Sequence record: MW749003.1
DNA: 64,000 nt
Strand: one strand, 5' to 3'
A program made the translations under genes and the position numbers. The notes beneath the pieces were generated by a model, which was not told the origin of the DNA, ran no database searches, and saw only the letters and a list, made by a program, of their open reading frames with translations. This document shows, one piece after another, positions 3 to 57,800 of this stretch; position 1 is the stretch's first letter, and the number at the start of each line of letters is the position of its first letter.

Positions 3-3000
3 ATGTATGATTATTCTACTAGAAACCTAAGTTTTATTAAGATCTGGAAGTTTCTAAAAGATCAAGGTATAAAAAATAATAAATTCTTTTTAAAATTAAA
101 TGATGAAACATTACAGGGTGTTGATCCATATGATCCAAATTTAACTGATGAACAAAAGGTAAGAATACAGGTTGAAGTAATGACTAACTTTTGGTATTTC
201 TTAAGGGAAGTAGTAAGAATTCCTGAATCGGGCGGTTCTATTCATTTCATGTTACACAGAGCCAATCTTGGTCAAATGTTTCTTATGGAAAATAATATTG
301 ATATGATTGAAATATTACCTCGTCAGAATGGAAAAACTATCGGTGCAGTATGTCGTTATATATGGGTATATCATTGGGCTACCAAAAATACTCATATGAT
401 TTTTAGTAATAAACAATACGCCGATTCTCAATTAAATATTAAACGTTTTAATGATATAACTGAATTATTACCTAGTTATTTAAAGACTCATTTAGACCCT
501 AAAAAAGATACAAATAACTTAGCACAAATTTCATGTGCAAAAAACAATAATAAAATTGATGCAATGAGTACTGCTAGGACTGTTACTGACGCTGACAAAC
601 TGGGTTAACTAACTATGGCTCAGTATAAACTCCTTTAATTTCTGGAACGTCCTTCCAAGGATAATCAGAAGCTAAGACTTTTAAAAGTAAAGTTCAACGA
701 CTATCGAAACCGACTTATTAGATCGTTGTGATAACGCTAGATAAGGATAAGGGAGTAGAGTAGAATACAAGCTATAGGTATTCAAAAAGGGGAGCACCGT
801 ATTTAGGTGAAGATATAGTCTCATCTCTATGGTAACATAGAGCAGTTCATAAGAGAACGGTATAGGCGTAGCGAACCTATATGAAGGTAACTTGCGTGGT
901 TGTACAGTACCAATTATATGGTTAAATTTTTAGCCCATTATAATAGTGATATTATAATGAATCCTTCTTAACTGCTGGAACATCCTTTTAGGACAATCAG
1001 CATCCAAGCATTGTTATATAAATAACAATGAAGGTTCAACGACTATCGAAACCGACTTATCAGATCGTTGTGATAATGCTAGATAAGGATAAGGGAGTAG
1101 AGTACAACTCAAGCGATTGGAGTTGGAAATGGAAGGCATCTCAATGAGATGAAGATATAGTCTCATCTTCATGGTAACATGGAGCAGTTCATAAGAGAAC
1201 GGTATAGGCGTAGCGAATCTATATGAAGATAAATGATGATGAATTTGCATTTTTAAAATATAATGATACGGTATACGCTAAACTGGTGCAAACTGGCGTA
1301 TTAAAACTCTCTTAACTGCTGGAAACTCCTAAAGTCTTTAGTACCAAAGTGTAATAATCTAAAGGATATATGGACAATCAGCATCCAAGCATTGTTATAA
1401 ATAACAATGAAGGTTCAACGACTATCGAAAAATATAATTTGTATTATATTGAGTAGAGTACTTTCAAGCGAAAGGAAAAGGAGAGCATGATGAAGGTATT
1501 AAATACTGGAGTGAAGATATAGTCTCATCTCTATGGAAACATAGAGCAGTTCATAAGAGAACGCATTAGACGTAGCGAATCTAATGGAAGGTAATTATGA
1601 GTGCTGCACCAGCACTATCAAAAGCATCAGAAGCCGCACAGCGTAATGGTACTCCTTACGGAAAATTAATTACAACAACTCCTAAACTATTGGGCAATAC
1701 ATTAGTAATAATGTAATTGAATCTTCCTTAACTGCTGGAAACTCCTATATGGACAATCAGCATCCAAGCATTGTTGTTTATAACAATGAAGGTTCAACGA
1801 CTATCGAAACCACTCTAACAGATCGTTGTGATAACGCTAGTTAGAAGGAAGGGAGTAGAGTACAGCCTAAGTGATTGAGGTTGGAAAAGGGAAGCATCTC
1901 AATGAGATGAAGATATAGTCTCATCTTCATGGCAACATGAAGCAGTTCATAAGAGAACGCATTAGATGTAGCGAATCTAATGGAAGATAAATGAATGATC
2001 TTGATACAGAAATGGGTAAATATTGTAAGGGTATGATTGATGATGCATGTCCATTTGATGAAGCTTGGTATGATTGGGATATTGATGAAATTAAAAAATA
2101 TATTGAACAGAACTCTCGAAATGACTTTGTTTATTTAGTATTTAATTATAAAGAGTTAGGACATGATGACAAATGGTATCAAAAACAATGTCGTCAGCTC
2201 AATAATGATTTATTAAAAATTAAACGTGAAATATTATTGGAATGGACATTGGCTAACGATACTTCACCTTTTTCAGAGGAACAATTAGCAGAAATTGGAC
2301 AACATGCAGGTGAACCTATTGGTAAGTTTTATGTAATGAAAAGATATAAATTTGAAATTTTCAGTGAAATGCGAAATATATTTAAAAAATCATGGCTAAT
2401 CGGTATAGATATTGGGGCAGGTTTGAATCGAGATTTTACAGTGATATCTATTATTGATCCTAAAGATATGGTTCAAAAAGCAGTATTTAGAAGTAATAAT
2501 ATATCTTTGCCCGATTTAAAAGATTTGGTTATACACCTAGTATTAGAATTTTGTCCTAATGGTGTCATTATTCCAGAACGAAATAACTTAGGTATCTCTT
2601 TAATACAAGATCTACTACGTTCAGAAGTAGCTAATAACTTATATTATGAAGTTAGAGAAGTAAAGGGAGAAAAGAAAGTTGATGACCCAAAAAGATCATC
2701 TAAAAAGACAGTTAAGACTAAAACAAGAGTTTATGGGGTTACTACTAGTAAAGATAGTCGGGATATAATGATCAATGAGATTCTTAGTAATGCAGTTAAT
2801 GATACTCCACATGTGTTTACAAGTAAATATATTTTTGAAGAATTAAGAACATTAGAAAGAAATAAGAAAGGAAAGATTGAACATAGGGATGGAGGTCATG
2901 ATGATACATTATTCTCATGGCTAGTGGCATGCTATGCTTTCTTATATGGAAATAATATAAATAAATTTGTTAAAGTCATCAGTGATGGCGATAATAATGA

Positions 3001-21966: not shown

Positions 21967-22740
21967 TTGAATTGGTTTAAAAGAATGTTTATGGCAAAGG
22001 AGAAGGATAAGGAAATTGATTCACTAAGAAGGATGGTTGAACAGAGTAATGAAACTATTAAACTCATGGATGGTGTCATAAAAAGATTAGAGGATAATAT
22101 GACTAAATCCAGACAAGAATCAGCAGCAACTCTTCAGGAAGAAAAAGAATATCAAGATCAAATGAAATTGGAATCAGAAAGGATGCGGGAATATGAATAT
22201 ATTCAAAATGCTCAAAAAGTTGTTTCTACTTATTTAACTAAATATCTAGATCGTTTTAATCTAATTGAAAATCGTTTTTCACTTGCTCATAATATAGATC
22301 TTCTTTCTAATTCTGATGACTTAATGTTTAAAATTGTACAAATGATTAAATTGTCTAAGACAAGTGTTGAATTTGCTACTGTTTGGAACAATCATGTTAT
22401 AAGAATTAGTATTGATAATGATGAAGATGATGTATATTATAGTATTAATGGTGGAAAAAATCTAAGTTCCGACATTGTAGGAACCAAATTTCTTACTAAA
22501 TTTAAGAAGGATATCCAATTAGATATATTGAATTTTCCATGTGTTCAGACAAATAAGATTTACGAAGTAACTGGTAAAAAGTACAAGTATGTCTTAGCTA
22601 ACTCAAGAAGAGAATGTTATTATATACTTAAAGATAAAGAGATGAAAACAAAAATAAAAGAAGTTAGTTTTGTTGAACCAAGTGCATATACACGTTCTAT
22701 TAGATCTAGACTAGTATATGTAGTGCCTCATCAAACTTAA
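21967..22740 (+). CDS. Hypothetical protein with N-terminal coiled coil
   Basis: 257 aa; GGGGAGG RBS and TTG start. Confidence 0.8.
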   Translation: MNWFKRMFMAKEKDKEIDSLRRMVEQSNETIKLMDGVIKRLEDNMTKSRQESAATLQEEKEYQDQMKLESERMREYEYIQNAQKVVSTYLTKYLDRFNLIENRFSLAHNIDLLSNSDDLMFKIVQMIKLSKTSVEFATVWNNHVIRISIDNDEDDVYYSINGGKNLSSDIVGTKFLTKFKKDIQLDILNFPCVQTNKIYEVTGKKYKYVLANSRRECYYILKDKEMKTKIKEVSFVEPSAYTRSIRSRLVYVVPHQT

Positions 22741-22748
22741 TGCTTATA

Positions 22749-22782
22749 AGAGTAAAGTCTTTTATAGACTTTACTCTTTTTT
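22749..22782. terminator. Bidirectional terminator
   Basis: AGAGTAAAGTCT/AGACTTTACTCT plus T-run between convergent genes. Confidence 0.75.
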
Positions 22783-25700
22783 TTATTCCCTAGTTAGAGA
22801 ATAGATTGCTTGTATTGCTTCATTCCCAATTTGGCGGGAGTTTCGACCCATTTGATCTAACATATTTTTCTTTTCCCATATTAGTCGTTCTGCTTCTTCA
22901 TTAGCTTCTTTACTAAATACTCCACGTAGAGATACTGTATCACCCAAAATCTTCCAGTAGATTCGCTACATCTACTGCGTTCTCTTATGAACTGCTCTAT
23001 ATTACTATAGAGATGAGACTATATCTTCACAATATAATTGTGCCCTCCGTTTCCATTTAAAGAGGAATTATAACCTTATTACGGAATACCTCTACCGCTT
23101 GGCTGTACTCTACTCCCTTCCATCTAACTAGCGTTATCACAGCGATCTGTTAGAGTGGTTTCGATAGTCGTTGAACCTTCATCTTTAAATGAATTAAAGA
23201 CGCTTGGATGCTGATTGTCCATATAGGATTTTCCAGCAGTTAAAAGGGTTTTACTACGACAGTAGATTATTATCTTTTATAGGTAAATACTAAATTACCA
23301 CAATCCCATATTCTTTTAAATCTAGTTTTATCCATGATTTCAAATTCAGTACTATTATCACTATATAATTTTGGAAATTTCTTTTTGAGATTAGACTTTC
23401 TATAATTAAATCTATGGAATCGTTGAGTTTTTTCAACATTAACATACCAATAGTTGGGTTTACTAATATGACTTAATTCAAATTTATTATTGATATAAAC
23501 ATTACCATCTGACCAGCGTCTATCTGCATAGGTTATTAATTCTTTCCACTCATAATTTCTCTCGAAGTATTTGAGAAGTTTACTAAAAGCACCTATTACT
23601 CTATAGTCCATATCGGTAGCGAATCTTGATAGTTCAAAAATATTATCAACACTATTTCTACCTAGACTTTTTCTAAGTTTACTAAAAGTCATAACCGCTA
23701 CAAGTTCATCGCCATCTTCTTTTGGAAGCCATAAGCCTAATTTAATTGATGACAAATCTTTTCCCTGAATGTGATTTCTTTCTAGGAATTCATTTTTAAA
23801 ATTGTTATCAATTACTTCTACATAACAATTTCTAGCGTATATTTTAGTAGAATTATTTAATTTTAGTAAGTGTCTTATTTTTTCTTTTACTATGAGAGGT
23901 TTGTTAACCCATTCGTCTTCAAAAATTTGAATTAGTCTAATCCCTTTACTATTACATTTTTCTAATTTTTCTAAATGATAGTTTCTTTTCTTCCCCATTT
24001 GCTCTGAATGCCAATATAAACCATTAAATTCAAAAGCAATTTTTTTGGAAGGAATAAATATATCAATCTCTTTACCTTCAAGTAATTTCCTGTCATTACA
24101 TATGACTTTATCTACAACTAATCCTTTAATAAAAGAAGATAGTTCTTTTTCCATTTTTGATGAACTTTTAAATGCACAATATGGACATCTATTTCCATTA
24201 TTAAAGTTTTTAATTGTAACTTCATACTCCTTATTACAACTATGATGTAACAACCTAATCTTCGTTTTATTATTACGATATTCACCTAATAATGAATACT
24301 CATTATTTGTAACTAAGCTAATTTTTCTTTTAACCTCATCAGTAGTTAGCCTTCTTTTACCAGAACATTGAGGACATCTATTTTTCAAAGCATAATAAGG
24401 AGTAGTCTTCCATTCATAATTACAGTCATTACATCTGAAAAGTATTTTGGTATCGATATTGATATATTTCTCAAGACTTATAAGTCTTCCATTAGTCTTT
24501 TCTTTTAATTCCTTCTTAAACTCATCATTGCTTTTTAATCTTGATTTACCTTTATTAATATCAGCACACTGAGGACATCTACTACCATTATGAAATATAT
24601 CAGGTCTAACCTCATATATATTTCCACATAGTTCATGCCTTAATTTGATTTTAGTCTTATTGTTAATATATTCATTGGATAAAACTGTATAGGTATTGTT
24701 AGTTAGTAATTTAACTTCTTCTTTGAATTCATCCAGTGTCTTTTTGCGTGGCATACACTAATACCTCCAAATAATTAATAATTATTTGTTTATTTGACAC
24801 TGTATTCCCTTAAAAAGAAATAATATTGAATTTATCGTAGTCCCCGCCTAAAGCCTTTAAATAACCATTATAAGGAATTACTGTATCAACAAAAAGTTCA
24901 TCCTCTGCGGGATAGTCAGGGTATATAACAGGATAATCAGGTAAGTATCTATCTTCCAGCTTTTGAGGTCGTGTTTCTTTTGTTGAGAGAATTCTAATTT
25001 TACTTGGATAAATATTCTATAGTGATAGGTAAAGATTTGATATAATCTCCTCTTTTTCCCCCACTTCACACCCTACGTGCGACTTTCACCGCATAAGGCG
25101 TTCCATCAAAATATATTATTTTGACTATGACCCTTCGCTCCAATGGAGTTACCCATCTTCATAACTACTATGGTCTGCTGACTTTCTATATAAGAGTATC
25201 AACTATAATTTCTCTTATATAGAATCTCTGACGTTCCGTAAATGATAGTATAGCTATAACTTAGATGCCTTCTGCCCTATATAAACTTCTATTGTACCAC
25301 ACTTTACAATCAGGTCGTTCACCAGTACCGTATTACTAAACCCTGAATTTATATAGTATAAAAAGGTTCGTGTTCCTCATCATATTATAGCACCGCCCAC
25401 CCTATCTATTAGTATTATAGCATTACTAATATTCAGATGACTTCACCTAACTTCATACAAATATTTTATATAGTTTAAAATAGATGCATGTAGGAGTATT
25501 AGCGACAAGTCTTCAATGAAAATGGTCATATCTTTTACTTGTTCTCATTTACAGTTTAGATTATAAAATCTACTCCATTTCACATTAAATGCTTATAGGA
25601 GAACGTCACATACGATACTGCTCTATTGGATATCTTGTTACATATACATGTTTATCTTTGGTAATATCAACTGCCGCAATGAATAGAATATCAGTTAATG

Positions 25701-26778
25701 TAAAGTTACGTCCTAGTTCTTCTCTATATAATGGAATAGGAATTTCATTCCCCTTATCATCTTTAATCATTAAACTATTAAAACGACTTTCAATAGACTT
25801 AATGTATAATGAGATCATCTTTTTAACTGCTTCCTCAGAAAATTGTTCTCTTATATTACTAATAGTTATCTCTTTTCCATTATGCTTAAATTTACTAAGT
25901 TCTGATTCACGTTCAAGAATATAATCTTGGATATATTTAAGAAAGAATGGATAAAATTCTACCACTAATTGTGATAGGGGAATACCTGTCCATCCAAATC
26001 TAATAGGGTTATCCTTCCAGCTATTTGACTTAAATCGTGGTGCTGAGATTACACTACGAGTTGCATAATCAACAGATTTACCTAAAGAGTTTTGATGGAA
26101 CATACCATTTTTACCAGCTAAAGAGGATGTAAAATAGTCATAGATATCATATAAAAGAGTCTGAATAGATGATTCTGTTATTACTCCCATAAAATCATAA
26201 TCTTCACCCTTAGAAATTGATTGGCTATACCTAATTAATTTAGCATATTTGTCATTCACTTCATCAACAGCTTTAATCGTATCATTAGAAGATTTTGAGG
26301 GATTATAATCTCTATAAAATGCTGGAATCACTAAATATTTGTCAATAAATATATCATCCTTACCAAGTTTATTTAATAATGTAAGATAACTTGTTCGTCT
26401 ATCAGTTCCAGTATTACTAAATTTTAATTGGTCGTAAATAGTATAAAAATAGGTAACTCCAGTTTTACCATTATCTTTATCTTCAACTAACTTGCCGCCC
26501 TCAACTTTAAAATATTTCTTTCCAGATAGACAATCTGCAATTTTTCGATCCATAGAGGTTAGAAGCTTATAAATTACTGGATGGAGAAATTTTCTCTTTA
26601 AGTCTATATAACCGAAAATTATTTTTCTTTCTTTACTTCCCGGATAACCAAAAATACTAGTTGAAAATAATCCATCTTCAGTTGGTATATTTCCCATATT
26701 AAAGTAAATCGGATTTGTTACTTCTTTACATGCATGAGAAGTAATAAATTTATCTATATTTAATGTATCTATTTTCAT
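22783..26778 (-). CDS. Multisubunit RNAP beta' N-terminal (catalytic) subunit, probably virion RNAP, spliced: complement(join(22783..22944,24834..25018,25614..26778)), 503 aa
   Basis: GLFSTSIFG, GKSVDYATRSVI and TRYP motifs. The spliced frame (1512 nt) reads TRYPIEQY|QNIYPSKI...NGYLKALGGDYD|GDTVSLRG, restoring the DxDGD catalytic motif. The late promoter at 26801-26812 fits a packaged enzyme. Confidence 0.92.
22945..24833 (-). mobile_element. Group I intron (1889 nt) with a homing endonuclease gene in the P1 loop, inserted in the DYD|GD active-site motif
   Basis: Exon end CUACGAU pairs with GUCGUAG (23254-23260). P4, R and S elements and the conserved 3' module lie at 22945-23250; terminal G at 22945. 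Confidence 0.93.
23270..24754 (-). CDS. Intron-encoded homing endonuclease: Zn-finger repeats + Vsr/EDxHD-like nuclease + C-terminal Mom-like GNAT domain
   Basis: Three H/C-xx-C...RCPxC repeats; EIDIFIP...FEFNGLYWH; ELSRFAT...ITYADRRWSDGNVY. Own late promoter at 24779-24790 and GGAGG RBS. Confidence 0.8.
   Translation of the reverse strand: MPRKKTLDEFKEEVKLLTNNTYTVLSNEYINNKTKIKLRHELCGNIYEVRPDIFHNGSRCPQCADINKGKSRLKSNDEFKKELKEKTNGRLISLEKYINIDTKILFRCNDCNYEWKTTPYYALKNRCPQCSGKRRLTTDEVKRKISLVTNNEYSLLGEYRNNKTKIRLLHHSCNKEYEVTIKNFNNGNRCPYCAFKSSSKMEKELSSFIKGLVVDKVICNDRKLLEGKEIDIFIPSKKIAFEFNGLYWHSEQMGKKRNYHLEKLEKCNSKGIRLIQIFEDEWVNKPLIVKEKIRHLLKLNNSTKIYARNCYVEVIDNNFKNEFLERNHIQGKDLSSIKLGLWLPKEDGDELVAVMTFSKLRKSLGRNSVDNIFELSRFATDMDYRVIGAFSKLLKYFERNYEWKELITYADRRWSDGNVYINNKFELSHISKPNYWYVNVEKTQRFHRFNYRKSNLKKKFPKLYSDNSTEFEIMDKTRFKRIWDCGNLVFTYKR
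25019..25613 (-). mobile_element. ORF-less group II intron (595 nt, IIB/bacterial class B-like)
   Basis: 5' end GUAUG; D1 closure UGACGUUC/GAACGUCA; ~25-nt D4 hairpin; D5 ACGCCUUAUGCGGUGAAAGUCGCACGUAGGGUGUG (CGC triad, GAAA loop); D6 ending CCUAUCACUAU. Excision restores the frame (c+ag = Gln). Confidence 0.9.
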
Positions 26779-26868
26779 TTAAATTTCCCTCCTATTATTA
26801 TAATAATTTGTTAACGGTTTAAGAGAAATGAACAAAAAAAAAAATATGAAGGGATTAACCTTCATATT

Positions 26869-27132
26869 TTATTTAAATTCAATTTTTTCATTTCCCAATG
26901 GCATAATTCTAATACTGTTACTAACTGAGTCGTTTACAATAATACAATCAATTGATCTATTATCTTTTAAATAAATTAGTCTTTTAATGAGAGTTGGTTT
27001 TTTAGGATCAGACATTTTATTTAATGTATCAAGCTTATTTATTACATCTTTAGTAGTTTCTCCGCATAATAATTCTGATTTTTTATATCCTTTAACAATA
27101 GTTAAATAAAAGTTTTCATTTAGGTATTTCAT
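26869..27132 (-). CDS. Hypothetical protein
   Basis: 87-aa ORF with RBS, followed by a hairpin at ~26843-26868. Confidence 0.7.
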   Translation of the reverse strand: MKYLNENFYLTIVKGYKKSELLCGETTKDVINKLDTLNKMSDPKKPTLIKRLIYLKDNRSIDCIIVNDSVSNSIRIMPLGNEKIEFK

Positions 27133-49983: not shown

Positions 49984-50030
49984 AAAATAAAGGATAGAGA
50001 TAATTTAATCTCTATCCTTTATTTTTTTTT
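49984..50030. terminator. Bidirectional terminator
   Basis: AAGGATAGAGAT/ATCTCTATCCTT with A/T tails between convergent genes. Confidence 0.75.
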
Positions 50031-51759
50031 TTGTATACTTAAAAACTAAATTTCCACAATCCCAAATTCTATCATAACCAGCTTCTCTCATAATTTGAAT
50101 TTCTGTTTTATCATTACTATAAATTTCTGGAAATAATTCTTTTAATCTTTGTTTTCTATAGTTGTATCTATGTGAAAGACTCAATTTATTTTTATTAAAA
50201 TACCAATAATTTGGCTGAGAATTATGCATAAAGTGAAAGTTATTTTTATAATATACATTTCCTTCTGACCATCTTAAATCAGCATATGTTATGATGTTAT
50301 TCCAATCATAATTCTTTTTAAAATAACTGAATAATTTTCCAAAACTACCTATTACATTATAGTCTCTTTCTGTAGCAAATCTACTTAATTCATAGTCATA
50401 TTTATTCCCTTTTTGCCCTAAGCTAACTCTAGGTTTACAGAATGTCATTACTGCTACTAACTCATCACCCTCATTCCTTGGATACCATAGTCCCAGTTTA
50501 ATAGTAGAGTTATCAGATCCCTGAATATGATTTTTATCTAAAAATTCTCTTTTCACATTATTCTGAATTTCTTTTATATAACATTTTCTAGCATATATTT
50601 TTTCTCCATTATTTAAACCTAAAATATGTTTTATCTTTCCCTTTATAAGTTCTTTATTATCAATCCACTCATTCTCAAATAAATGAATTAATCTTATACC
50701 TTTTTCATTACATTTTTTCAATTTATTTAGATGGTAGTTTCTACCTTTTCCTTGAGATTCACCATGCCAATATAAACCATTATATTCAATTGCTATTTTC
50801 TTTGAAGGTATATAAATATCCAGTTCTAAACCTTCAAGTATTTTTCTGTCTGATAGAATTACATTAGTGCTATTGGGGAGAATTTGTTTAATATAATCAT
50901 ATAATTCAATCTCATCTTTTGAATTATGTTTCTTTAGTTGACATCTAGGACAATCTCTTTTAACTTTTTTACCTCTTGAATTACCATGTAAAATATCGAC
51001 CGGTCTAACCTTCCAAGAATAGCCACATGAATGCTCAATAACTATTGGAGTTTTATTATTAATATATCTACTCTTAATTGTATAATCATTACTATTAAAT
51101 ATTCTATAAAAATCTTCTTTAAAACCATTAGATCCTTTATTTTTTGGATTTTTATTACATATATTACACCTTTTTCTTTTTAGGAAATTAGTTGGTGTAA
51201 TAAAGAAATTATGAGAATCACTAGTATTGTGTCTCATCTCAATTTTATCTTGAGAGCTAATATATTCTCCTAATACAGTATATTCATCTCCTACTAAATC
51301 ATACACTTCTTTAATAAACATTTCAGTAGTCTTTGTCTTTTTCCTTTTTATTAGTTTCTTAGTACAATCAGGACATCTTGAACCCTTACTGAGAAAGTCA
51401 TTAGGTCTTTTTTTAAATTCCTTATTACAGATGTTATGTCTAAGTAATACTAGTTCAGAACTATTAATATATTCTCCTAATACAGTATATTCATCCCCTA
51501 CTAATTCATACACTTCTTTAATAAACATTTCAGTAGTCTTATTTTTTCTTTTAGATATTCTTTCTGATTTATGTAAAGGACATCTATTACCTGCATTTAA
51601 AAAGCCATTTGGTGTGACATAGTATTCATGACTGCATTTTTCATGTTTCATTTTTATTTTATTATTAGTTCCAGTATATTCTCCTAATACAGTATATTCA
51701 TCCCCTACTAATTCATACACTTCTTTAATAAACATTTCAGTAGTCTTCTTTTTAGGCAA
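50005..51759 (-). CDS. Free-standing homing-endonuclease-like protein: Zn-finger array + Vsr/EDxHD-like nuclease + Mom-like GNAT (likely TTG start 51759)
   Basis: Paralog of 23270-24754 (ELDIYIPSKKIAIEYNGLYWH; ELSRFAT...ITYADLRWSEGNVY). It lies outside any intron, after the beta gene stop. The start was chosen by the AAAGGA RBS and similarity to MPRKKT. Confidence 0.8.
   Translation of the reverse strand: MPKKKTTEMFIKEVYELVGDEYTVLGEYTGTNNKIKMKHEKCSHEYYVTPNGFLNAGNRCPLHKSERISKRKNKTTEMFIKEVYELVGDEYTVLGEYINSSELVLLRHNICNKEFKKRPNDFLSKGSRCPDCTKKLIKRKKTKTTEMFIKEVYDLVGDEYTVLGEYISSQDKIEMRHNTSDSHNFFITPTNFLKRKRCNICNKNPKNKGSNGFKEDFYRIFNSNDYTIKSRYINNKTPIVIEHSCGYSWKVRPVDILHGNSRGKKVKRDCPRCQLKKHNSKDEIELYDYIKQILPNSTNVILSDRKILEGLELDIYIPSKKIAIEYNGLYWHGESQGKGRNYHLNKLKKCNEKGIRLIHLFENEWIDNKELIKGKIKHILGLNNGEKIYARKCYIKEIQNNVKREFLDKNHIQGSDNSTIKLGLWYPRNEGDELVAVMTFCKPRVSLGQKGNKYDYELSRFATERDYNVIGSFGKLFSYFKKNYDWNNIITYADLRWSEGNVYYKNNFHFMHNSQPNYWYFNKNKLSLSHRYNYRKQRLKELFPEIYSNDKTEIQIMREAGYDRIWDCGNLVFKYTKKKIKDRD
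51261..51747. repeat. Three 73-bp near-identical direct repeats, 207-bp period (51261, 51468, 51675)
   Basis: Each encodes KTTEMFIKEVY(E/D)LVGDEYTVLGEY. Two copies are identical; the third differs at 2 positions. Confidence 0.9.
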
Positions 51760-51780
51760 AACAATCATCCTTTTATATAA

Positions 51781-51820
51781 ATTGGATTTCAACTATTATT
51801 TTGTTTAGTTGAAATCCAAT
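51781..51820 (-). promoter_or_regulatory. Late promoter AACA-N6-TA forming the loop of a perfect 15-bp inverted repeat
   Basis: Arms ATTGGATTTCAACTA and TAGTTGAAATCCAAT; the loop 51796-51805 is AACAAAATAA on the minus strand. Confidence 0.65.
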
Positions 51821-51838: not shown

Positions 51839-54800
51839 TTATTCTGAATATATTTTACCAATTTCTCGTTTAAGATGTACTAATGCTTTGTTTAAATATA
51901 GAGCATTATAAATATCAACGGTCATGCGTGAAACAATACTCAATGGACTCATAATAGCTTCAATATTCTCATCTGGATCATTCTCACTAAAAGGCTCTTG
52001 ATCTTTAGGAATAACATCAGATACAATTGTTTTAAGTGCTGTATAATACGTAATCTTATCTCCAATACCAAGTTCATCATCATACTCAATATAAATCTCA
52101 ATGAGTAGTCCGTCTACTTCAGTACCTTTAATTTTCTCACCTGATTGCTTTTGAATAGGTTTAAGATTAACAGAAGTCAGATCATTAGTAACAGACTTAA
52201 TCTTATCTTCTTTCTTCTTACTATCTTTAATATAGTTCTTCAGAATCTTTTGTACTGAAGGAGAAAACTCACTGATATCTTTATTGTAGTACATTACAAC
52301 ATCTACAATCTTACCAGTATATTTAGAACTTACTTTGTTCTTAGATAACTCATTAATAGTCTCATTAAAGTCATCTCCTAGTTTATCTAAGAGTTGGTTG
52401 AGTGATTTATCTTCAAAGGAGTTTTCAAAGATAATCAATGGATCACCAGTCTTAACCATATCGCCTTTCTTAACAATAAAGTCAATGTTTGAGTTAACTC
52501 CAAGAGCAAGTTCTTTCTTCATAGTAATTTTAGTAGATAGGTCTTGAGATAAGCTTTCTGTAATAATACTACTATCTTCATAAGTGTAATCTGCGCTTGC
52601 TAGTGCTACTTTACAAAGCTTCCCTGTAGTATACGTGATATCATCTTTCTTATCGCCAAGGAAGTAACTTGGATTCTTCGCTAGGATATCATCTTTTTTG
52701 AATTTCTCTCCTACTTTGATAATGAGTTCTTTACGATTAGCAATGTAAACAATTATCTTCCACCAAATTCGCTAGTTTTGGTGCGCCCTCTAACGGACTG
52801 CTCCATGTTACCATGAAGTTGAGACTATATCTTCAAAGTTCCCTGTTTCCCAGTATACATAAATAAAAGTATACCAGATTTCATCTCAGAAACCTGCCAC
52901 CAATCGCTTGTGGGGTACTCTACTCATCTTTATTAATAAGATTTTCGATAGTCGTTGAACGTTCTCTATTAGTTTAATAGAGCTTCGCTTCTGATTATCC
53001 TTTTAATAAGGACTTCCCAGAAATTAAAGGAATTTAACGTGAGCCTTTAAACCCACCATTACTATTCTTACTCATATGCTCGGAGAGATCAATGACGTCT
53101 TTCTTACCATCATTATAACGAACGACAGCTAGCTCATGTTCTTCATCTATGGACTCTAGAACTCCATCTTTTTTTGCTCTAAACACAAAGTCGTCACTTA
53201 GAATATAAGCAACAGTCTTCTCTACACCACTACCAAATAGAGGTTTAGATTGCTTTGTGGTAGGAATGATCGTTAACTTCCATTAGATTCGCTACGTCTA
53301 ATGCGTTCTCTTATGAACTGCTCTATATTTCTATAGAGACGAGACTATATCACTATCCTTAATAATTAAGGATAACTCCCATTTCCATTTAAGGGATTCT
53401 CACCCACTCCAAACACTTGAGCCGTACTCCTATTGCGGAATTTCACCGCTACTCACAATCCTAAGATTGCTTTCGGATAGTCGTTGAACTTTATTCAAAA
53501 GTTTTCTTTAAGTATTCTTCTAGATTACTTAACTGTGTATAATTGAATCTGAATAGTTTATAACCCTTTCTTTTACAATACTCATTTTTTAGATTATCAC
53601 GGAATTGTATATCCTCTAAGCCTTCTTCTCCACCAAAAAAATCAGATGGCTTAAAATGTTGCTTACCATCATATTCAACTAATATTTTAGTTCCGTCCTC
53701 ATCTTCAAAATAGAAATCAAATCGTAATCTTCTTCCTGTTTTTGGATTAACTAAGTCTGAAAATGATTTTTCAATTTCAAAGTAGATATTATTCTGGTTG
53801 AAATAATTAGTAATAATTTGAATCCCACTAGAATTTCTTCCAATTCCATTACTACAATGAGGACATCTGTACCCTAAAATAAAGTTATTTGGCTTTATCT
53901 TAAAAGTTTTTTCACATTTTCCATGATATAATGTAACATGTTTGTGAGCATGGGTATATTCATTTGTTAGAGAATATTCATTACCAACCAATTCATAAAG
54001 TTTTTCTTTAAATGTCTCTGTAGTTCTTTTTTTAGTTTTAGCACAATTTGGACAACGATAACCAGAAAGAAAATTTACAGGTAATACAGAATATTCATTA
54101 CCGCATTTGTTATGTCTCATCTTAACGTGAGTCATATTGTTTATATATTCAGAAGTAGGTTTATATTCATTACCGACCAATTCTTCAACTTTTTTTCTAA
54201 AATCAGAATCGGTTCTTTTTTTATTTTTAGCACAATTTGGACAACGATCTCCTCGTCTGATAAACTGATATGGTTGAACCTTATATTCATTACCACATTT
54301 ATTATGTCTAAATAAAATTTTAGTATGCTGTGCTAAAAATCTTCCTAATACCACATATTCATCACCAGTTAATTCTTTTACTTTCTTTACAACTTCCATA
54401 TGTTTTTTATTCAATAAACAAATTGGACATTTAGTTACTTTATTTTTCTTAAAGAAACTATCTGGTCTCATTTCAAATGTACTATCGCATACTTTATGAT
54501 AAAATATAGCATTTATAGTTGATGATATATATTCTCTAACTTCAAATTCATTATTATATACATCTTTTAATCTTCTAGAATAAACTTTACTTAACATATT
54601 ACACCCTCCGACAAACAGTTGTAATAATATGTTAAATTATTTAAAAACTATTTTGAATATTAGCTGCTGATTCTCCAATTCTATTAGTTTTCAAACCTTC
54701 ACGCTTATTATTTCTAATTACGTTGTGGTCTAATAGACTCTAAGGAATTTCCAGCAATTAGAGAGTTTATCTAATAGTATTACTACTATTAGGCACGAAT

Positions 54801-57800
54801 CATGCTTTTGTTGGGTACTCTGCATGCCTACTCGTGGAGGATCAGCATGCCTTACTGTAAAGGAGTTCAATAATTCTGCTGGACCATAGATATTTGTCGT
54901 GTTATTTTTTGTATTAGGATTGGTGTCTAAGAATCCTCGTGTGTTTTTAAATGCTGGATCAAAAGTTAACTGTCTAACCCATTATCTTCATATAGGTTCG
55001 CTACACCTATACCGTTCTCTTATGAACTGCTCCATGTTACCATGAAGATGAGACTATATCTTTATCTAGTCAAAAAAAAAGAAAGGAGATGACTAGATAT
55101 CTCCCATTTCCATTTAAGGGATTCTCACCCACTCCAATCGCTTGAGCCGTACTCCTATTGTGTGTTAACCACTAAAGGATAGTCGTTGAACGTTACTCTC
55201 GTTATAATTAAAAATAATTTATAAAATTATTATTTTATTTTTTCCATAATAGTAGCTCTCCTTTTTAACTTACTACTATTATAATATATTTAACGAGAGT
55301 CTTCGATACGGATTGTCCTATTATTAGGAGTTTCCCGTAGTTAGAGAGATTTTATCATTATATATCACTATATAAGGGGGCAGTTTAATTCACCCCAACT
55401 TTCATTATCTTCCACTAGATTCGCTACATCTAATGCGTTCTCTTATGAACTGCTCTATGTTTCCATAGAGATGAGACTATATCATCATCCTATTAGGATG
55501 CCTCCCATTTCCAACTCCAATCGCTTGAGTTGTACTCTACTCCCTTCCACTAACTAGCGTTATCACAACGATTTGTTAGAGTGGTTTCGATAGTCGTTGA
55601 ACCTTACTCTAATGAGTCTTGGATGCTGATTGTCCTTAAAGGATTTTCCAGCAGTTAAAGAGGTTTACTTATAATATTTCTATTATAAGGGACTATTATA
55701 AATCTTGTCTGGAAATTCAAGAATTATAATAATTCAATCCGAGTCGGGCGTTGACATTGCCATGATTCCACGCATACTAGGGTCATAAGCTCGAATATCA
55801 GTTGTATAAGCATCCGTTTTCCTTCATATAGGTTCGCTACACCTATACCGTTCCTTAGAACTGCTCTAAGTTTCCTTAGAGACGAGACTATATCATCACT
55901 TAAAAAGTGCCTCCCATTTCCAGCCTCAATTGCTTAGGCTGTACTCTACTCCCTTCCTACTAACTAGCGTTATCACAACGATCTGTTAAAGTGGTTTCGA
56001 TAGTCGTTGAACCTTTACCTTATTACAAATAATTTGTAACTTAGGTACTTGGTTGCTTATGATTACCCAATCCTTTAAATTTTTACCATACCTGAATTGT
56101 TATATTCAGCCATCTATTATGTTTCCATATAGATTTGGTATTAAAGGCTCTAAGGGTTTTCCAGCAGTTAAAGAGGTTTTAATTGGACTAAAACACTTTA
56201 ATCCAAGTTCCTTCCTGAAAGCCCCTTGTAAGTAGCCGCACCACCCTTTTCAATTTCCAAAGAAGGGTTAAGGACACTATATTCATCGACAGTAGGTGAA
56301 TTCATTAATGTCTTTAATAGAATATCCTGTGGAACAGACATCTTAATAGGATTACCAGCTTTCAGTGTATCCTTATACGTTTTAAATGAATCTGCCAAGA
56401 TTTTATATAGATAAGCATTTACTTGCTCAGTACCACGGATTCGATATGAATTCATATCATTCAGTGGACTATAGCTCATATCTTCCAATAAGGTATTCGC
56501 ATACAACAATATGTCATAGATATTCTCAGGTAATTCTAACTGTTTCAGCACATCTAATGTGATAGGATCAACCATTAGAGATAGAGTATTGTGAAGACCT
56601 TTACCCATATTTCTACTACCGAACATCTCATAGAAAGTCTCAATATAAGGATCTTTAGAGTTCATTTCTTCAAATGCATACTCTTCAGTAGCCATAGTAC
56701 TTAGACCACTTAATAATAGGGAATTTCTCAATAAAGAATTATTATAATATAGGTATCCATCTTTAAAACGGATCTTATCATAGTCATCATCAATTGTAAT
56801 TCTCTTATTTTTAGTATCAAAGCTATATTCAATATTATATCTTTCTAATAAATCTTCTAATCCTAATTCATATCCAAGAAGAACCACTAGAGGGATCATT
56901 CTATTATTAATACGAACTCGGTTATATGCTAGAGACTTAGAATTACTTAAAGAAGATAATTTTTTATAAGCTTCCTCACTAAGTGAAGTGACAACAACTT
57001 TAATAATGAGTTCTGAAAGACTCATATCAGTATTTTCTTGTTTCTTATTATTAATCAGATAAACTCTTTTACTTGAACGATTAAGAGCAATAACGTTTTC
57101 ATTATCTTTTGTATGACCGATTGGTAAGAATTGTTTATCATCAATATTAATCTTAGCAAGCTTAGCCATATTATCAAGATCACTTTTCAATAAATCTTCT
57201 ACTTCTTTTTGACTGAACATAAGTTTATATTCATCATTCTCTAAGCTTAGAAGGAAAGAAGAAATCTCATTATATTCAAGAGTTGTTTCATAACCCTCAT
57301 TAATTGTTAGAGCGTTACCTAGGCGATAATTAAACTTCTTACCTGATACCTTAAATTCATTTAAATCCATACCAAAGAGTTTCTTAAGTTTCTCAGTTTT
57401 ATGAGATAATTTAGAACCAAAGCGCATGACAAAAAACTTATTGTAGTTAGTAGTAATCTGAACTTCATCAGGTTTTGTTTTTACAATGGGCAAAGATAGA
57501 ATTTGCTTAAGAATTAATTTTTTACCACCATTAATATTCATAAACCTACCATCTCTGATAATAGGATAATCAAATTTAACAGTATGCTTTACATTACGAT
57601 CATCTTGGAAAGTAACAGTATAAGTTAATTTTTTTGATAAATCAGTAGATGTGTCTTCTGTTTTAATATCACTTACAAATAATTTAACATCGCTATCTCC
57701 ATTAAATGATGAAAGAACTGCAACTAAGTCTTTTTTCATCTGTTTTTCAAAGTAGCTCATATCAAAATCTTTGAGATTTGAATATCTAGTTTCTTCTTGA

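Follow-up and report, generated by a model that had tools for sequence, protein, structure and literature searches.

Group II and group I introns in a virion RNA polymerase gene of Bacillus phage Internexus: an endonuclease gene in the predicted P1 loop and a distal guide

The open reading frame (ORF) of the T4 td intron, that of I-TevI, is located in the P6 region, and a late promoter lies inside this phage intron; the details of I-TevI control were reportedly given by Gibb and Edgell in 2010. In Ppo.L1925, a nuclear rDNA intron, the endonuclease gene—that of I-PpoI—is located in P1. Sense-strand endonuclease genes forming P1 extensions have been described for the myxomycete S1389 group I introns of nuclear rDNA (PMC8395846), and an interplay between translation and splicing, together with an in-frame stop codon soon after the 5′ splice site, has been reviewed for the T4 introns (PMC3984707). 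For the phages AR9 and PBS1, the layout of an RNA polymerase (RNAP) gene with two introns has already been published, as presented in the passages of NAR 2025 that accompany its Fig. 5A and cite Lavysh 2016. Here, the corresponding gene is analyzed in a 64,000-nt stretch of record MW749003 (hereafter, the window), the source of which is the Bacillus jumbo phage vB_BspM_Internexus (hereafter, Internexus) of the AR9/PBS1 group. The gene occupies window positions 22783–26778 on the minus strand and carries two introns, the first of group II and the second of group I. With high confidence, the locus is read as a virion RNAP gene carrying two mobile introns, with an endonuclease-filled P1 loop, a distal guide, and a promoter that uncouples endonuclease expression.

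The Internexus locus agrees with AR9 g145–g147 and with PBS1 genes 32–35 in the gene itself, both insertion sites, the ribozymes (98–99% identity; 97–99% for the group II ribozyme, and 99% for the group II intron against AR9 with the domain IV insert set aside), the endonuclease (99% identical to AR9 g146), and the internal late start site, and window positions 22600–26900, which match record MW749003 at 100% with unchanged coordinates, are 98.4% identical to AR9 and PBS1. It differs from both in domain IV of the group II intron, from which a 961-nt insert—in AR9, the endonuclease gene g147 and its own promoter—is cleanly missing; PBS1 also carries the endonuclease gene, and a late start site for g147 is listed in Table S3 of the AR9 differential RNA sequencing (dRNA-seq) data. 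The T4 td/I-TevI system resembles the Internexus group I intron in having a late promoter inside a phage intron, but differs in the position of the ORF (the P6 region there, the P1 loop here), and no hairpin sequestering the ribosome-binding site was found here in the predicted fold. The rDNA introns with P1 endonucleases share with it a sense-strand gene in P1 and a guide far from the 5′ splice site; however, they reside in eukaryotic nucleolar rRNA, encode His-Cys box enzymes, and have no coupled translation, whereas the Internexus intron resides in a phage mRNA and has a phage late promoter and a putative CapR/Vsr-type enzyme—the CapR/EDxHD-Vsr-type class of homing endonucleases being taken from passages of NAR 2025. 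The keyword-matched passages of that paper contain no description of the P1-loop position of the ORF or of the distal guide.

Exon junctions and spliced RNA of the polymerase gene

The exons were compared one by one against reference sequences. The intronless gene of the relative Goe21 (1512 nt) is matched without gaps, with its bases 1–1165, 1166–1350, and 1351–1512 corresponding to window positions 26778–25614, 25018–24834, and 22944–22783, respectively, and the three exon translations completely tile the Goe21, BpSp, and LPJP1 proteins, except for a split Gln codon. All three of these relatives encode the same protein without either intron. The first-pass annotation had proposed that a single 185-nt exon separates the two intron classes and that DYD|GD is split by the group I intron after its second Asp, just ahead of the Gly; the alignment to Goe21 fixes both to the exact base, with the motif itself aligning with GDYDGD of the AR9 non-virion β′ subunit.

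RNA contigs show both introns being removed. When contigs from public RNA runs were placed on window positions 22700–26850, the group II joint 25018/25614, which skips 595 nt, was found in four runs from two studies, one of them a single-organism study of 2017 whose contigs carry AR9-type letters. The group I joint 22944/24834, which skips 1889 nt, was unambiguous in two runs (X2 and X3), both food-fermentation metatranscriptomes, and all three exons are joined in one contig (X2 record 8). Both introns are excised exactly, and the flanking exons ligated, in RNA. A further contig (X6 record 26) has lost the group II intron and kept the group I intron, with exon 2 continuing into it. Exon 2 of the RNA contigs matches the form found in intron-bearing alleles (4 differences) and not that of Goe21 (32 differences). 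Run X2 also yielded a contig that is identical to Internexus and runs across domain IV with no ORF in it, so at least one of the joint-bearing samples contains the short form of the group II intron. Formation of the subunit mRNA requires both introns to leave the RNA, as they do in vivo.

A separate observation concerns the tip of group II domain IV (window 25115–25117), where a well-covered contig in both metatranscriptomes has 34 other bases; it would represent either a third form of domain IV or a related intron copy.

The proposal that one catalytic-subunit gene contains both a group II and a group I intron holds as well, with Rfam matches to both classes on the minus strand. For the group II intron, RF02004 (D1–D4) matched at 80.5 bits (25559–25386) and RF00029 (D5–D6) at 55.1 bits (25103–25019), both above the gathering score, and D6 was aligned to the Rfam model inclusive of the bulged A. 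The element has the features of a group II intron (CL00102 and RF00029), namely D1–D4, D5–D6, a 5′ end resembling GUGYG (here GUAUG), a 3′ end of the AY type (here AU), and the bulged A. GGUACUG (intron bases 285–291), which could pair with CAGUAUC, is a candidate for exon-binding site 1 (EBS1) of an EBS1–IBS1 pairing with the 5′ exon, as is GAUACU at base 414. For the group I intron, RF00028, with a gathering score of 50, matched at 85.5 bits (23306–22995), covering the full model (1–253); the predicted P3–P9 core is thereby placed above the family threshold. A 113-nt insert lies between P7 and P3′ in the Rfam alignment, at the place that P7.1 and P7.2 occupy in subgroup IA2, which is typical of phages.

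The gene product is the N-terminal half of a β′-like catalytic subunit of the virion-packaged RNAP, a protein of 503 residues encoded by a late gene. Its GDYDGD is aligned with the same motif in the solved β′ chain of the AR9 non-virion RNAP (7S00/7S01, chain d), and the other matches for the metal-binding DxDGD region are bacterial β′ chains; the sole Pfam match of the exon 1 product, to RNA_pol_Rpb1_1, is sub-threshold. DxDGD thus lies in a β′-like N-terminal module, as in multisubunit RNAPs. In AR9, the annotation of the homologue g145 (“virion RNAP subunit, β′ N-terminus”) joins three pieces, with the endonuclease genes g147 and g146 inside, and the Internexus record enters the exons as separate genes without a join. 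The present three-exon structure corrects the gene model of that record. Also annotated in the record, within the group I ribozyme core, is a 32-aa “hypothetical protein”, INTERNEXUS_27 (window 23124–23222), which is probably not a real gene.

The predicted endonuclease-bearing P1 loop and its guide

The search for guides covered the whole 1889-nt intron and required pairing with the final 6–7 exon bases, including a G·U pair at the splice site. GUCGUAG (23260–23254) is the only site in the intron that offers Watson–Crick pairing plus the splice-site G·U pair for the last 7 exon bases, with a chance expectation of ~0.1 by our own estimate. Between the 5′ splice site and this guide, which begins 1573 nt further along, lies the entire endonuclease ORF (24754–23270). 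Unconstrained folding of the 2236-nt precursor comprising exon 2, the intron, and exon 3 recovered the same pairing as an 8-bp P1 (24841–24834/23253–23260), with pair probabilities of 0.94–0.998. The first-pass annotation had placed this guide ~1570 nt downstream and the whole endonuclease ORF inside the P1 loop, and both placements are borne out by the search and the fold. In the modeled helix, U24834 is paired to G23260, and the final intron base is G22945; the 5′ exon would thus present a U to a guide G, with a G ending the intron, and P1 is predicted to form in this way.

P1 and the guide are unchanged in AR9 and PBS1, and the pairing draws indirect support from the exon end and from a second intron of Internexus. 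The exon end reads GAC UAC GAU in the intron-bearing alleles and GAU UAU GA(U/C) in the intronless Goe21 and BpSp, with the two C bases of the intron-bearing alleles—both at synonymous sites—turning two P1 G·U pairs into G-C pairs. This group I intron has no P2, and the endonuclease gene, equipped with a ribosome-binding site and a late promoter of its own, would fill the P1 loop; selection of the 5′ splice site would therefore fall to a guide that lies 1573 nt further downstream, immediately ahead of P3.

A second intron of this design is found in the DnaB-like helicase gene of Internexus (1356 nt; MW749003 158891–160246, L011:1431–2786), also of group I and with an endonuclease ORF in the P1 loop. 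Its guide GCUGUGA, located 5 nt before P3 and within the last three codons of the ORF, complements its own exon end UCACGGU, and the junction set by the intronless AR9 g007 lies where the guide predicts. The helicase intron is present in Internexus only, with AR9, PBS1, and Goe21 lacking it. In five other endonuclease-bearing group I introns—four in the Internexus record and one in an AR9-type record (G001)—the ORF lies between P4 and J6/7, so a P1-loop ORF is the minority design. The other Internexus endonuclease introns have the same ribozyme family, P3–P9 core, and 3′ hairpin, but the ORF of the other endonuclease introns examined is outside the P1 loop, a P1-loop ORF being seen only in the RNAP and helicase introns.

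The endonuclease matches CapR (E = 2.5e-13, in two stretches) and DUF4379 in Pfam and PHROG 559 (E = 6e-155), with weak matches to Vsr and MTES_1575 (E = 0.02–0.08). Full-length paralogues that are 50–59% identical, inclusive of the C-terminal 200 aa, are encoded at window 50005–51792 and at MW749003 125956–127398, and a plain motif search beside the closest full-length paralogues (49–59% identical) found no intron core on their own strand. The sequences hint that the group I endonuclease may have been captured from a free-standing gene.

The “internal late promoter” of the endonuclease, invoked in the first-pass annotation, proves to be real: in Table S3 of the AR9 dRNA-seq data, g146 has a late start site 25 nt ahead of its ATG, with an upstream sequence equal to that of the window, where the site maps to 24779. 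The AACA-N6-TA motif alone is uninformative, with 5 occurrences on this strand versus 5.2 expected, and it is the two sites matching AR9 starts that count. In AR9 at 40 min, g146 RNA (722) exceeds g145 RNA (298) in the same data. Endonuclease mRNAs from the internal promoter do not contain the 5′ exon, which uncouples endonuclease expression from the polymerase precursor. In the full-length fold, masking of the ribosome-binding site showed no clear difference between the precursor and the promoter transcript.

Three further pairings were considered and rejected. A helix closing the P1 loop (24825–24807/23286–23269), a possible P1 extension, has a duplex energy of −14.4 kcal/mol, with energies at least as low in 4.6% of ORF windows and 2.1% of shuffles, and it was dropped, being also missing from the full-length minimum-energy fold. 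A pairing between exon GGGG and P3 CCCU suggested by the fold is not conserved, because AR9 and PBS1 have GGAG. The 9-nt repeat AAUCUACUG, present before the guide and in the 3′ hairpin, was considered as an alternative-pairing switch; in AR9, a paired substitution has altered the copy in the hairpin but not the one before the guide, and the repeat is probably due to chance.

Coordinates of these elements are collected in Table 1.

Table 1. Features of the polymerase gene and its introns in the window
Feature	Position	Strand	Description and basis
Late promoter of the RNAP gene	26801..26812	-	AACA-N6-TA; start site 26801; AR9 g145 late start site (dRNA-seq Table S3) with identical upstream sequence
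Exon 1	25614..26778	-	1165 nt (388 codons + 1 base); 98.8% identity to Goe21 bases 1–1165
Group II intron, ORF-less	25019..25613	-	595 nt; 5′ GUAUG, 3′ AU; Gln codon C|AG split; Rfam and RNA joint
Exon 2	24834..25018	-	185 nt; last codons D-Y-D; Goe21 alignment
P1 5′ strand (predicted)	24834..24841	-	ACUACGAU, final 8 bases of exon 2; full-length fold; same in AR9 and PBS1
Group I intron	22945..24833	-	1889 nt; preceded by U, final base G; RF00028, RNA joint, and Goe21 alignment
Late promoter in P1 loop	24779..24790	-	AACA-N6-TA; start 24779, 25 nt before endonuclease ATG; same sequence at AR9 g146
Homing endonuclease gene	23270..24754	-	494 aa; CapR-like zinc-finger repeats, Vsr/EDxHD-like middle, C-terminal 200 aa without Pfam match
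Candidate P10 guide	23261..23264	-	UACU; may pair with GGUG (first 4 bases of exon 3), with two G·U pairs; from sequence
Internal guide, P1 3′ strand (predicted)	23253..23260	-	GUCGUAG + U; 9 nt after endonuclease stop codon, 5 nt before P3
Ribozyme core P3–P9	22995..23252	-	Contiguous; Rfam alignment; large insert after P7 at the P7.1/P7.2 place; no P2
3′ terminal hairpin	22955..22977	-	Loop GUAGCGA; common to group I introns of Internexus
Exon 3	22783..22944	-	162 nt with stop codon; opens with the G-D codons of DYDGD
Terminator-like hairpin	22750..22778	-	Fold: 13 bp, −16.9 kcal/mol; separates the RNAP gene from the convergent gene 21967–22740

With respect to group I introns elsewhere in the phage, eight further cores of the same family were seen in the terminase and RNAP β genes (window 596–1942 and 52801–56243), as well as a ninth at ~54800–53280 that is interrupted by an endonuclease ORF and was missed by Rfam. 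By plain motif searching, intron cores were located at L007, L008, L009, L011, and L013, five of the seven paralogue loci. An Rfam scan of the seven loci at the gathering threshold (L005, L007–L009, L011, L013, and L014) was blank and was treated as uninformative; the blank arose despite clear group I core motifs, such as that at L011 701–965, and is seemingly a tool or filter effect.

The AR9 copy of the RNAP intron differs from those of Internexus and PBS1 by six changes clustered in P9 and the 3′ hairpins (window 22957–23006), four of which make up two compensated pairs: the P9 pair 23006/23001 is preserved by a double change from A-U to G-C, and the 3′ hairpin has a paired change from G-C to U-A at 22975/22957. 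The 3′ hairpin of AR9 is also similar to that of the β-gene intron in the window (53301–53279). Comparison of these sequences suggests that patch conversion between intron copies may lie behind the AR9 hairpin changes.

Origin of the introns and their possible roles

Exon 2 stands out from its surroundings. It differs from Goe21 at 32 of its 185 bases (17% DNA divergence) with 2 amino-acid changes, and the diverged tract as a whole, consisting of the last 22 nt of exon 1 and all of exon 2 (24834–25635), differs from Goe21 at 36 positions, mostly synonymous. The tract ends at the group I site, with the first 77 nt of exon 3 identical to Goe21, and within it Goe21 is nearer to BpSp than Internexus is. 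In its sequence, 24834–25635 looks like a conversion tract bounded by both intron sites, a pattern that fits, without proving, the import of both introns together with the intervening exon 2 from a diverged donor. Two mobile self-splicing introns have invaded a late gene for the N-terminal part of the virion RNAP β′ subunit, and the group II intron of Internexus has lost the endonuclease gene that its AR9 counterpart holds in domain IV. Because the relatives are intronless, the group II endonuclease insert has been lost in Internexus, and the exon 2 tract is diverged yet mostly synonymous, we infer that the introns are selfish passengers and not regulators.

The first-pass annotation had raised the possibility that ribosomes on the endonuclease ORF, or the internal late promoter, modulate P1 formation and so RNAP output. 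On this view, the P1-loop layout would act as a control, with translating or terminating ribosomes, or promoter activity, gating P1 and so setting the amount or timing of the RNAP subunit. The geometry lends itself to such a role: with the stop codon ending 9 nt before the guide, a ribosome terminating there would sit over the P10 guide and probably reach into the P1 guide, and the guide of the helicase intron is itself part of the coding sequence. The exon reading frame extends 7 codons into the group I intron before meeting a stop. Ribosomes would have access to the precursor, as AR9-like phages lack a phage nucleus, the interplay of translation with splicing is documented for T4 introns, and the endonuclease RNA outnumbers that of the polymerase gene in AR9. 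However, because Goe21, BpSp, and LPJP1 lack both introns, a regulatory need is not evident. Furthermore, RNAs from the internal promoter cannot alter P1 of the precursor in cis because the 5′ exon is missing from them, the predicted P1 is very stable, and the ribosome-binding site is masked no differently in the two transcripts. Such a control is therefore considered unlikely. Somewhat less likely still is a combined scheme, in which translation of the P1-loop endonuclease and formation of P1/P10 would be mutually exclusive on any one RNA, the internal promoter would resolve this conflict by way of separate endonuclease mRNAs, and the ribosome load late in infection would then tune splicing of the subunit, perhaps with exon donation in trans.

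Donation in trans can also be envisaged by itself, with endonuclease mRNAs—which contain the guide, the core, and exon 3—base-pairing to the end of exon 2 on a second RNA and donating exon 3 to it in a partial trans ligation. RNAs without the 5′ exon do exist and are, in AR9, more abundant than the gene transcripts; for a P1 loop of 1.57 kb, there is little topological difference between cis and trans pairing; and trans-spliced group I introns are known in organelles, as noted in passages of PMC3873408. Ordinary cis splicing, however, explains all of the contigs, and trans ligation is considered very improbable. The least probable of the alternatives, at the very edge of credibility, is that splicing uses another guide, either proximal to the 5′ splice site or at GUUGUAG in the ORF (24118–24112). 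The latter is a weaker site that pairs with the exon end if two extra G·U pairs are allowed, but it lies ~860 nt from P3, whereas the site at 23260 lies 5 nt from P3, like the guide of the helicase intron; the same pairing search gave zero candidates in the 79 nt preceding the ORF, and it is 23260 that the full-length fold selects.

The reading favored here, of a virion RNAP gene with two mobile introns and a guide beyond the endonuclease gene, has several points weighing against it. The three copies of this intron do not differ in P1, which therefore shows no covariation among them, and a search of IMG/VR for diverged copies of the locus returned AR9 only. P1 of the helicase intron was not recovered by thermodynamic folding (probability 0.008); since folding misses this weaker P1, its support is position and complementarity. 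On the RNA side, the splicing evidence consists of public RNA contigs and not of an assay of Internexus itself, and such contigs tell nothing of the order, efficiency, or strand of the two splicing events. In addition, the group I joint comes from two metatranscriptomes only, for which, strictly speaking, an intronless allele with an AR9-type exon 2 could have been the template.

Elements of this kind are not new, and regulation of the RNAP by its introns is unsupported by the present evidence. What is added here is the Internexus gene model, an explicit description of the P1 loop and distal guide, the helicase example found only in Internexus, the endonuclease-less group II variant, and the exon 2 tract. 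The near-identical group II introns with the endonuclease gene (AR9 and PBS1) and without it (Internexus) constitute natural experimental material. Overall, the RNAP and helicase introns are two phage group I introns in which an entire translated gene separates guide and splice site, and they may serve as compact cases of long-range P1 formation set against ribosomes.

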